A DNA stretch of 64,000 bases from Macrostomum lignano (lineage: Eukaryota): positions 119,428-183,427 of the forward strand of contig NIVC01001672.1 in the NCBI GenBank assembly GCA_002269645.1. The letters are read 5' to 3'. This document shows, piece by piece, positions 18,494 to 26,453 of this stretch. Position 1 is the first letter of the stretch. Every line of letters starts with the position of its first letter. The notes below the pieces were generated by a model. It did no database searches, was not told the origin of the DNA, and saw only the letters and a list, made by a program, of their open reading frames with translations. The position numbers and the translations under genes were made by a program.

Positions 18494-21242
18494 CTACTGC
18501 CGTTTCTCCAACGAGAATGACGTCATCGACGGCTGGCAGACCAATTTGACAGAGCTGCTGTCCGCAGGCTGCATCAGCACGGCAACGGTTTCGCCAGCTT
18601 CCAGACTCCTGATCCCGAACAGAGAGCAGCACTCGTGCACAGCGCTTCCCGCCGTCAGGGCACCAATTCGGCAGTAGTCGATTTCATCCGAATTGTTAAT
18701 CCAGATTCCGAATTTCACCGTTCCAGTGCTTATGGAAAAGCAGATCTTGTCAAGCGTGTGTTATGGAAGGCATAAATCAATGATGCATTCAATGATGCTG
18801 AAGCCCCTGGTGCTGAAGCCCCTGGTGCTGAAGCCTCTGGTGCTGAAGCCCCTGGTGCTGAAGCCCCTGGTGCTGAAGCCCCTGGTGTTAAAGCCCCTTG
18901 GTGTTAAAGCCACTTGTGTTAAAGCCCCTGGTGTTAAAGCCCCTGGTGTTAAAGCCACTGGTGTTAAAGCCCCTGGTGGTGCTAAAGCTCCTGGTGCTGG
19001 CTCGGCCCCATCAAACAAAACAGCTTTTCCCAAAAAAGACCTTCCACTGATAAAGTTTCTGGTTACGAATCTGGATAAACCAATTACGAGCTACGAGTAT
19101 ATCAATGGAGAAACCGGCAAAACAGTTTACACTCACTTTCGAAGCAATCCGGTAGTCACCCTTTGATTTAACGGTGGCGAAGAGGCTTGTCCTGTTGAAG
19201 CCAATCAACGAGTTTGATAACTTACTCGTGCTTTCTGGAGCAAATAAGACCATTCTCCTGCCGCTTGGAGTCGATAGGACTTCTATAAAGGGATGCCAAG
19301 GTAGCATTTAATCATGTGATGCACCTATACGTAGATAGATAGATAGATAGATAGATAGATAGATAGATAGATAGATAGATAGATAGATAGATAGATAGAT
19401 AGATAGATAGATAGATAGATAGATAGATAGATAGATAGATAGATAGATAGATAGATAGATAGATAGATAGATAGATAGATAGATAGATAGATAGATAGAT
19501 AGATAGATAGATAGATAGATAGATAGATAGATAGATAGACAGATAGATACATAGATAGATAGATAGATAGATAGATAGATAGATAGATAGATAGATAGAT
19601 AGATAGATAGATAGACAGATAGATACATAGATAGATAGATAGATAGATAGATAGATAGATAGATAGATAGATAGATAGATAGATAGACAGGCTTGACCAA
19701 CAGCTCTGCATTTCAGCTACTTGTCATTTGGTTGATATCCGGGCAATCCGCTTCATGAGAATTAATCGTTAGCCTGATCCAACTTAGCGGCCTATTGGGA
19801 TCCCGGATCTGTTGGCAGTAAAGAGGATGACAACGAGATTAAATGTGTAGAGTCATTCAGCAATCAGCCAAACTTTCTACTGCAAGTAGATAGACTAAAA
19901 TACGATAAAACTTTTTGCAGAATGAAACGTGTTCAAAAAAAGAATTATATAATCTGAGAAATTTTGCTCCGCCGTAAGGACCCGATAGGACCGGCTGTTC
20001 CTGATTCGGAAAATCTGCAGACCATCAATGCTACAGCCAAGCTTTTCTGCCATCGTTGTGGGACGATGTTCCGCCAGAACCCTACTGCGATTATTATGAT
20101 TATAATTCACCACTTACGCTATTGCAGCTGCACCAAGCCAAATAGTACCCAACCAGCAGCAGCGTCAGCAGCAGCTGCGCACTCAGAGTCGAGGCCAACC
20201 GACAAGCACTCGAATTCAGCGTCTCTGCCAACGATTGTCGAATTCTGCCCAGCTGATTTGGCCTCCTGACCATGGCTTGCTCCATCGCCGCAGCTGTGGC
20301 CTCCTCTCGCGGATCTCTCTCTGGCAAGGTTGGCGGGCTCGGCTCCGCATTGTCTCTGCTGCTGTGTGGGTTATTAGGCCTCCTCGGGTTCGGTGACTGG
20401 ATGCTGGTAAAGTGCAACGGCTGTACGGCTGGCAGCGAGCCGGCTCCCGAGGTTGTCGCAATTGTGGCGATTTTCCTGCAACGCATTATCATTCGAACTC
20501 GCTACTTATTGGCTTTCATGCAAACCAACAATGAGCTTCGATCGTGATTTAATTTAAAATTAAAAAATTTTGTTGTGCTTATGATGAATCAATTTCCTTT
20601 GATTTGCAATTGTTCCACTAATACTACTTACTGAGATTCCCTTCAATGGAATACCTCTTAACTGGGATTTCATTGTCTGGGATTCCCCTAACTGGAATTC
20701 GACTGACTGAGATTTAACTGACTGGGATTCTCCTTACTGGGATTTCCCTAATTGGGATTCCACTAATTGGGATTTCCCTAATTGGGATTCCACCGACTGG
20801 GACTCCCTTAACTGGGATTCCACCGACTGGGATTCCACTAACTGGAATACCACTGACTAGGATTCCCCTAACCGGAATTCCCCTAACTTTTTCTAAAACC
20901 CTAATTGTTTCTGAAAACTAATAATATGTAAATTTTCAACCTGTTTTTCCCCATTTTTCATTCTTGGTGGCCGCAGGCAGAAACAAAGGATTAAGGCACA
21001 GTAATTTAGAGCGCGATCGAATATTAACGACAGAAGCATTCGCAGAGATTTTATTACCTGTTTACATGCTGCTGACCGACAGGCGGTCGAACTGGATTGG
21101 GCTGCAAATAACCCGAGGTCGACCCGCCATCCGAACTGAATTGATTTGTGAATGACGCCTCTCTACTATTATCGGATGCCTCCGGTGACCTGTTGATGTA
21201 CTCGCCCGTTTGCCACAGGTGCCCCACGCCGCCAGTAGCCAT
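18494..21242 (-). CDS. TNF-superfamily ligand-like type II membrane protein A, about 342 aa; complement(join(18494..18745,19137..19282,19721..19808,20118..20475,21058..21242))
   Basis: Five exons join in frame (phases 2,0,1,0). One hydrophobic anchor (LLLTLLLVGYYLAW). C-terminal THD-like strands: WIRLTINS, ATVKSKGDYRIASK|ICF, YC...CCSLFGIRSLEAGETVAV...PSMTSFSL. Intron 3 donor (GTAGCT) and intron 4 acceptor (AAG) are weak. Confidence 0.75.
18795..18995. repeat. 15-bp minisatellite (GCTGAAGCCCCTGGT) in TNF-like A intron 4
   Basis: Tandem periodicity. Confidence 0.9.
19330..19688. repeat. (GATA)n microsatellite in TNF-like A intron 3
   Basis: About 90 tetranucleotide units. Confidence 0.98.
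20650..20888. repeat. Degenerate minisatellite, about 19-20 bp (ACTGGGATTCCCC/ACTAA), in TNF-like A intron 1
   Basis: Repeated CTGGGATT motif. Confidence 0.8.
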
Positions 21243-21907
21243 TTTGGTTGAGTCCCGGTTAACTTTAATCCAAGAGGCTTTTCTTGTCTAGACTAGTAAA
21301 TGTCCCGCGTATGGCTGCAGTTTTGTATCTTTATGATGTACGTGTGTGATGTACATGGAAGCGGGGGCATGCTATCTTTCCCTCTCTCTCTCCCCTCACT
21401 CTCTCACCCCTGTGCAGGGAAGTTCTACCAGGTGAAATGTCACCACCGAACTTTGTTTATATTGCGATTTATCAAGTAGCACTGAATAAAATTACATCGA
21501 AAAACTTGGGACAGTTGCAAAACGTAAAATTTTGGCGAAAATTATTGCGCTATGTTTATGAAGCTTAGCGCAAACTGTTGTTAAACTTTTTCTGTACATA
21601 TTTCACACGGATTCTTTCAAAGGTGCGTGTATATATTTTTCTAAACATCCGCCAACCACGTGATTTGACAGCAACCAAGTTTTGAATAAAGAAATGTATC
21701 AAGGTTAAAACAAAACAAAATGTAGTTTATTCAAATAGAAAGAGGTTTTAATCATGCAGGTGGACCTGGTGCTTTAGATCTCTTTTTCTTGAAGTAATCT
21801 TGAAGTAATCTTGCTTGAAGAGTCATAGTCGGTCAAATAGAGGCATAGCCAGTATTTTTCATTACATGAGGAGGCACATCTTTGTGTGGGCCCCAAGGCG
21901 ACAGTGA

Positions 21908-25500: not shown

Positions 25501-26453
25501 TCATTTTAGCGCCGCAGGGACTCATTTTGGCGCTGCAGGCACTCATTTTAGCGCTGCAGGCACTCATTTTGGCGCTGCAGGCACTCATTTTAGCGCCGCA
25601 GGCACTCATTTTGGCGCTGCAGGCACTCATTTTAGCGCCGCAGGCACTCATTTTGGCGCTGCAGGCACTCATTTTAGCGCCGCAGGCACTCATTTTGGCG
25701 CTGCAGGCACTCATTTTGTCACATTCAAAGCAAAATTATTGATTTCCATAACCGGTCACTTAGCTTTTACTGTGGGGGGTCATGCCCACCCTTGTCCCAA
25801 CCCGGTGGCGATGCCCCTAGAACCAGGGGTCGTGATGCGAGTCAGAGCTCTTATAAGGCTCATTCACACTGCCATCAAACGAGTCACCAAAGCACACGAC
25901 CAATGCACAAAGGAATCAAATTTGATGTACAAATTGTGTGATCACACGAAATTTGGTCTTATTTGATGGCAGAGTGGAACGATCCTTTAGACTGTGTGTT
26001 TTGTTATAGTCATCGCACAGTCTAAAAATGAACTAGTCTGTATTTCCTTCCGCAGCTGCTCGAGAGTACAGAGCTGCTGAAAAGTAACTCAAGTGACACA
26101 GTGAAGTTGATCACCTTTTCCATTGACATTGCAGACGATGCAGAGATCCTACCGTCCTTGAGACCGCGATTGTTAAGCAGAAAGACGCAACAGACGGCGA
26201 ACAGAGCAACAAGAATGGTCTGGCAGACGAGCCACAGGGCTGGCGTGACGGCGCCTTTCTGCAGGCAGGGTGGCCGGTGATCCACAGCCATGTCGTACAC
26301 CTGGCTGAACCGTTGGCTGATCACCGAGCGAGGTCGCGCCCGATCCTGGCGATGCTTTTTCGACTGTTGCCGATTACTGCTCGGATGGGTGTTCTTGGCT
26401 CGGAGGCTGACCTCAGCCTGTCCGGCGTTCATGTACAGGTAGCTGCCCGACAT
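22532..26453 (-). CDS. TNF-superfamily ligand-like type II membrane protein B; complement(join(22532..22765,24285..24421,24510..24579,[25993..26076 uncertain],26115..26453))
   Basis: Anchor [22 protein letters not shown]. The last three exons share intron phases (0,1,0) with paralog A and read [26 protein letters not shown]|VTF, SC...[18 protein letters not shown]...[11 protein letters not shown]. The 5' exon boundaries are tentative. Confidence 0.7.
22772..24228. repeat. 15-bp minisatellite (GTGATGGATGAATTG), about 95 copies, filling the last intron of TNF-like B
   Basis: Tandem periodicity; source of the spurious MDELV / IHPSP ORFs. Confidence 0.98.
24657..25717. repeat. 21-bp minisatellite (GCAGGCACTCATTTTGGCGCT), about 50 copies, in a TNF-like B intron
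   Basis: Tandem periodicity; source of the spurious AAGTHF ORFs. Confidence 0.98.

Follow-up and report, generated by a model that had tools for sequence, protein, structure and literature searches.

The gene pair and its database models

Two genes lie head to tail on the minus strand of a 64-kb stretch of DNA from the free-living flatworm Macrostomum lignano. This whole stretch is called the window below, and all positions refer to it. Gene B is upstream and encodes a protein of 259 amino acids (aa), and gene A is downstream and encodes 342 aa. The locus extends from 18494, the last base of the A stop codon, to 26453, the ATG of B. A first reading of these letters (the original prediction) had described the two as a tandem pair of diverged tumor necrosis factor (TNF) superfamily ligand genes. 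Our analysis makes it probable that A and B are genes for TNF homology domain (THD) ligands, encoding very divergent, membrane-anchored proteins like TNF-family cytokines. They are two new members of a family already known in M. lignano and not a new kind of gene.

All eight peptide motifs quoted in the original prediction were found where it had placed them, each occurring once and on the minus strand. Every intron of A and B is bounded by GT..AG, and the open reading frames (ORFs) are uninterrupted after joining. The exons are as follows, with a slash marking the boundary between exon and intron in the donor sequences.

Gene B
26115..26453, minus strand: exon 1, with the ATG at 26453, cytoplasmic tail, membrane anchor and stalk; donor AAG/GTGATC, phase 0; same junction in the database protein P0003
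24510..24579, minus strand: exon 2, start of the domain; phase-1 donor ACA A/GTAAAT; same junction in P0003
24285..24421, minus strand: exon 3, middle of the domain; phase-0 donor GCT/GTAAGG
22532..22765, minus strand: exon 4, C-terminal half of the domain (VTFWNPS...TYFEIEMRQ) plus the stop codon; intact in the homeologous copy

Gene A
21058..21242, minus strand: exon 1, with the ATG at 21242 (MATGGVGHLWQ...), cytoplasmic tail; donor AG/GTAATA, phase 2; matches the N-terminal part of the database proteins P0001 and P0002
20118..20475, minus strand: exon 2, remaining cytoplasmic tail, membrane anchor LSAQLLLTLLLVGYYLAWC and short stalk; donor AGC/GTAAGT, phase 0; same junction in P0001
19721..19808, minus strand: exon 3, start of the predicted TNF homology domain, IRDPNRPLSWIRLTIN...; phase-1 donor ACA A/GTAGCT; same junction in P0001
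19137..19282, minus strand: exon 4, middle of the domain, ending ...VKSKGDYRIASK; phase-0 donor AAA/GTGAGT; 100% identical in the homeologous copy
18494..18745, minus strand: exon 5, C-terminal half of the domain (ICFSIS...CCSLFGIRSLEAGETV...TSFSLEKRQ) plus the stop codon; predicted local distance difference test (pLDDT) score 70-83; matches TNF superfamily (TNFSF) structures

The introns that flank and split the C-terminal domain have phases 0, 1 and 0 in A and B alike, as had been claimed, and M. lignano database proteins share these junctions. The correspondence extends to their exact placement. A phase-0 intron falls exactly 5 residues past the Y of G-x-Y-R-I in both genes, and the phase-1 intron falls 19 (A) or 21 (B) residues past the W of W-I-x-L, in both cases at ACA A/GTA.

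Complete gene A has five exons. The original prediction had its domain exons right and missed the additional 5′ coding exon (21242..21058), which is spliced in phase 2 to a second exon starting at 20475, where the earlier model had 20285. This upstream exon was revealed by P0001, an NCBI entry named "hypothetical protein BOX15_Mlig026490g1, partial" from M. lignano, which is 98% identical to A and has the same three domain junctions. A second entry, P0002 (UniProt A0A1I8HU60, "Uncharacterized protein"), is a model of gene A from which both middle exons of the domain are missing; their 88 + 146 = 234 nt are skipped in frame. The skip (window 19808-19137) could be an error of annotation, or it could reflect a genuine isoform without half of the domain. 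The database entries that we found for gene A carry no functional label.

Gene B is represented by P0003 (UniProt A0A1I8IXE1, M. lignano), which is 91% identical to it and is named "TNF_2 domain-containing protein", a name that presumably reflects the PROSITE THD profile PS50049. P0003 shares the first two of the three B junctions. Its third junction differs, using an alternative AG acceptor at 22732/22731 that leads into the +1 frame of the same DNA. We take this to be an annotation workaround, because the version in the window keeps the V-T-F strand of the family and is also encoded at the homeologous locus. P0003 ends with a 4-aa extension (...MRQWQPV), which suggests a changed stop in another copy. 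An alternative exon-1 donor of B at 26153 was rejected: being in phase 1, it would disrupt the reading frame, and the donor found in P0003 is the one at 26115.

The expectation that automated annotation had missed or fragmented the pair was therefore borne out in part. The B copy P0003 already carries a TNF_2 label, whereas A is listed as hypothetical or uncharacterised and in one model is exon-skipped, and B is uncalled on a homeologous contig described below.

In each protein a cytoplasmic tail at the N-terminus is followed by one membrane anchor, a very short stalk and, at the C-terminal end, the probable TNF homology domain. A hydropathy scan found one hydrophobic 19-mer in each (Kyte-Doolittle 1.67 in A and 2.78 in B), with basic residues on its N-terminal side in A and B, which fits type II topology. 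No N-terminal signal-like hydrophobic segment was found in either protein by this simple scan. This agrees with the single anchor and cytoplasmic N-terminus of the original prediction. A furin-type cleavage motif in the stalk is typical of EDA, BAFF, APRIL and TWEAK; no R-x-[KR]-R motif occurs anywhere in A or B. Since their stalks lack it, A and B probably act while bound to the membrane, from cell to cell, or may be shed by another protease.

Recognition of a probable TNF homology domain

Sequence evidence came from a profile specific to the family. A hidden Markov model (HMM) of eight published flatworm TNF ligands scored B at 62.7 bits and A at 18.9 bits, and the best of 4000 shuffles reached 7.4. 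When A and B are aligned jointly with the published ligands, all sequences agree at the F, G-x-Y, Cys, Cys, R, G and T columns. A profile made from A and B alone had three matches among PDB sequences at E <= 10, and all three were ectodysplasin (E = 0.13-0.81), a weak but specific result. When a nine-sequence family profile that included A and B was used instead, the PDB matches were an APRIL/BAFF fusion (1e-22) and EDA (2e-10), followed by BAFF, APRIL, Eiger and RANKL.

The two invariant Cys columns, shared by A, B and seven published ligands, align, column against column, with the Cys pair of APRIL. A disulfide between strands E and F is common to Eiger, EDA, BAFF, APRIL and TWEAK and is absent in TNF-alpha and TRAIL (PMC6684607). 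The alignment thus supports the view that the A/B domain is of the ancestral Eiger/EDA/BAFF/APRIL type, with a predicted disulfide between strands E and F, in line with the cysteine pair that the original prediction had assigned to an EDA/BAFF/APRIL-type subgroup.

Structure prediction with AlphaFold2 pointed in the same direction. The alignment for each of the two models held three sequences: A, B and P0005, a bona fide TNF ligand. The B domain was predicted with a pLDDT of 61.6 and a predicted template modeling (pTM) score of 0.59. The A domain had a pLDDT of 57.0 overall and of 70-83 over its last 100 residues (61-160). In Foldseek searches of the PDB, the top 50 matches of the A model and of the B model were all TNF superfamily ligands, so that both are predicted to adopt the THD jelly roll. 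For B, the top match was EDA-A1 (E = 1.5e-4, TM score 0.59), followed by GITRL, CD40L, TWEAK, TNF-alpha, Eiger, BAFF and APRIL. The matches for A included TL1A (E = 6.7e-6), EDA-A2 (root-mean-square deviation 2.7 Å over 98 columns), FasL, Eiger, LIGHT and TNF-alpha. C1q structures were absent from the top 50 PDB matches of both models.

General-purpose searches recovered little. A phmmer search of PDB sequences with A and with B gave noise only (a topoisomerase, a DUF1071 protein and a reductase; E = 0.03-0.24). Word-indexed homolog searches returned near-identical M. lignano entries only, and P0005 was added with the family profile.

Origin of the pair and competing readings

A and B are 24% identical over 97 aa (pairwise E = 0.004). 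This identity is weak when taken alone and is reinforced by the shared intron positions. In a neighbor-joining (distance) tree, {A,B} was split from seven published ligands with 100% bootstrap. The pair is consistent with old tandem duplicates, as the original prediction had proposed, given that the genes are neighbors on one strand, have introns at matching positions and in matching phases, and form the {A,B} split in the tree. No third paralog was found in the window when all six-frame segments were searched with an HMM of A and B. The two copies have not diverged equally: B retains most family motifs, and A is much further diverged, chiefly in the N-terminal third of the domain.

Both genes recur, in unchanged order and with intact ORFs, at a colinear homeologous locus on contig NIVC01001124.1. 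Their exons are 98-100% identical between the two loci, compared with about 90-96% for many flanking stretches. The B copy on that contig (5089-8817) is intact and has no called gene in the NCBI record; its last stop-codon base is unaligned.

Several results weigh against identifying A and B as TNF ligands or limit how far the evidence for it can be taken. None of the four sequences scanned (the spliced A and B proteins, P0001 and P0003) matched the Pfam TNF model (PF00229) at a threshold as loose as E <= 10, so the HMMER check that had been suggested for both genes failed. When 1.84 billion representative proteins were scanned exhaustively by HMMER with the A+B profile, two self clusters were recovered and no relative outside them; the one other return was a low-complexity N-terminal match (P0004). 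The F-H-L motif and extra loop cysteines of B and the published ligands are missing from A. The first 60 residues of the A domain were modeled with pLDDT < 35, leaving the N-terminal strands unresolved. Confidence in the structure models is moderate, and they are not fully independent of the TNF hypothesis because a known TNF ligand (P0005) was part of the three-sequence alignment. The {A,B} grouping might reflect long-branch attraction, as both branches are long. Finally, the ratio of nonsynonymous to synonymous differences (pN/pS) between the loci was 0.63 for A (15 differences) and 0.36 for B (11), values that do not establish constraint.

Three published flatworm ligands scored 31.2, 23.6 and 16 bits on PF00229, so that two of the three pass its cut-off of 23 bits. 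Since the Pfam TNF scan is blind to A and B, recognizing them as TNF ligands needs a family-specific profile or structure.

The main rival reading is that B is a working TNF ligand and A is a decaying or neofunctionalised duplicate that forms no receptor-binding trimer, perhaps serving as a regulatory subunit or a decoy, or persisting as an expressed relic. We consider this unlikely. The much lower family HMM score of A (18.9 against 62.7 bits), the lack of a confident fold in the N-terminal 60 residues of its domain, the missing F-H-L motif and loop cysteines, its pN/pS of 0.63, and the P0002 model that skips both middle domain exons in frame would all fit this reading. Yet at two loci A has an unbroken ORF and none but canonical splice sites, and its middle domain exon is 100% identical between them. 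The THD fold is predicted for the C-terminal 100 residues, with pLDDT 70-83, and the G-x-Y, Cys-Cys, R and G columns are retained there. The weak N-terminal model may stem simply from the three-sequence alignment.

Also unlikely is a reading in which the pair represents a branch of its own among the flatworm TNF ligands, one that evolves fast and goes unseen by standard domain models. Being neighbors in the same orientation, the two may assemble into A/B heterotrimers, as in BAFF/APRIL or lymphotoxin alpha/beta, or they may engage a partner other than the NGFR-like TNF receptor (TNFR) reported for M. lignano. If so, a regenerating flatworm would have more TNF ligand diversity than is catalogued, and parasitic flatworms, which at present are believed to have no endogenous TNF, might possess cryptic ligands of a similar sort.

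A very improbable third reading takes the domains to be C1q-like globular heads, with the jelly-roll superfold that C1q has in common with TNF, and not TNF ligands. C1q and TNF domains have the same fold and low sequence identity makes them hard to separate, and A and B go unrecognised by Pfam TNF. However, Pfam C1q gave no match to A, B, P0001 or P0003 either. The original prediction had held C1q to be less likely for want of a collagen repeat, and this judgment held up: A and B have no Gly-X-Y repeat and no N-terminal signal peptide, and carry type II anchors instead. The structural matches among the top 50 were all TNFSF ligands, EDA provided the sole PDB sequence matches of the A+B profile, A and B were significant against bona fide flatworm TNF ligands, and the E-F cysteine pair is that of EDA, BAFF and APRIL.

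That the gene models are chance ORFs joined in repeat-rich DNA is barely credible and already effectively refuted: minisatellites do make long spurious ORFs, such as a 533-aa frame across 24133..22535, but none of the exons falls within an array, the junctions recur in independent annotations of two assemblies, both proteins show significant family homology and are predicted to fold as the same domain, and both are conserved at the second locus.

For A and B as membrane-anchored TNF-family ligands, what is known of the family suggests how they might work. Both would trimerise on the cell surface and signal by clustering a TNF receptor on a neighboring cell. A candidate receptor is the death-domain-containing M. 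lignano TNFR BOX15_Mlig018038g1 (PMC7519573). The analysis itself shows the gene structures, the homology to flatworm TNF ligands, the predicted fold, the conserved cysteines and the intact copies at a second locus; trimerisation, receptor binding, mode of release and biological role are inferred.

Repeats, neighboring genes and relation to known ligands

Tandem arrays are present in four of the seven introns of A and B:

18796..18998: 15-nt minisatellite, last intron of gene A
19332..19687: (TAGA)89 microsatellite, gene A intron between exons 3 and 4
20659..20888: 15/30-nt minisatellite, first intron of gene A
22771..24159: 15-nt minisatellite, about 93 copies, filling the last intron of gene B; stops 5 nt short of the acceptor and reads open in the frame of the last exon
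24125-24228: 16-nt array, from the tandem array scan
24659..25718: 21-nt minisatellite, about 50 copies, first intron of gene B

The 15-nt array and the last exon of B together make up the stop-to-stop ORF of 533 aa (window 22535-24133, minus strand), which naive ORF callers would call a protein. The original prediction had presented the genes as hidden among minisatellite introns. The arrays are indeed in the introns, but they are not specific to A and B: all over the 64-kb window there are high-scoring micro- and minisatellites, at least 25 different arrays with periods of 3-41 nt and lengths of up to 1.5 kb. Because the arrays are pervasive, the tandem repeats are a property of the genome region, and having introns filled with minisatellites is a trait of the genome in general, not of these TNF-like genes.

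Other genes and ORFs in the window include the following:

10549-11184, minus strand: exon-sized ORF with a protein kinase domain (111 bits); probably the window copy of a 547-aa kinase gene that lies downstream of A on the homeologous contig
27158-27231, plus strand: tRNA-Asp (anticodon GTC), about 700 bp upstream of the B start codon and on the opposite strand
29340-30416, plus strand: 358-aa ORF whose counterpart on the homeologous contig is an uncharacterised gene of 362 aa; its one Pfam match, the coiled-coil-type MAD, is weak (16 bits) and below the cut-off
34287-36203, plus strand: full-length HSP70 in an uninterrupted 638-aa ORF (Pfam PF00012, 847 bits), apparently intronless
53145-54632, plus strand: 495-aa open stretch with the C-terminal part of a myosin head motor domain (520 bits), probably one large myosin heavy-chain exon

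Flatworm TNF ligands were first reported in 2020, in free-living species, by Bertevello et al., whose set includes ten M. lignano sequences (PMC7519573). Neither A nor B is in the sequence file of that study. The apparent absence of ligands in parasitic flatworms underpins the idea that the TNF receptors of schistosomes and tapeworms listen to host TNF, and Pfam PF00229 was the model behind the survey (PMC7519573). The most useful lesson of the present pair is methodological: flatworm TNF ligands can diverge past the reach of PF00229, and a survey based on it misses such ligands. Because A and B escape this model, the catalogue of the M. lignano family falls short of its real size, and "absence" in other flatworms should be revisited using family-specific profiles or structure searches. 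M. lignano, a regeneration model, gains two candidate signaling genes; otherwise this is ordinary gene-family bookkeeping.

Among known systems, the C1q domain proteins resemble A and B in having a ten-strand jelly roll of similar size that trimerises. They differ in that A and B have no signal peptide, no collagen repeat and no Pfam C1q match.

EDA and the other members of the Eiger/BAFF/APRIL/TWEAK subgroup are type II membrane proteins, like A and B, and EDA-A1 and EDA-A2 (1rj7, 1rj8) are the best or near-best structural matches of the A and B models. Identity between this subgroup and A/B is 13-21%. EDA has a collagen-like stalk, whereas the stalks of A and B are about 12-20 residues long and have neither a collagen-like region nor the R-x-K/R-R furin site. 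The canonical F-F-G of the last TNFSF strand is Y-F-E in B and S-F-S in A.

The published ligands of Macrostomum and other rhabditophorans come from the same species or phylum and have the same E-F cysteine pair as A and B. They are 22-28% identical to B and 13-21% identical to A, and B keeps their loop C...C pair. They differ from A and B in scoring on PF00229 (16-31 bits for the three scanned, compared with no score for A or B), and in the distance tree A and B fall outside the cluster formed by seven of them. The published rhabditophoran ligands, such as BOX15_Mlig009154g1, M_lignano_0006798 and M_lignano_0005508 (P0005), have a type II anchor followed by a C-terminal THD, as A and B do. 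Motifs common to the published flatworm ligands and A/B are W/I-H-L-x-I-D, G-V-Y-R-I, Y-T-x-C-T-x-x-G-x-R-R-L-x-x-G-D and T-F-x-G.

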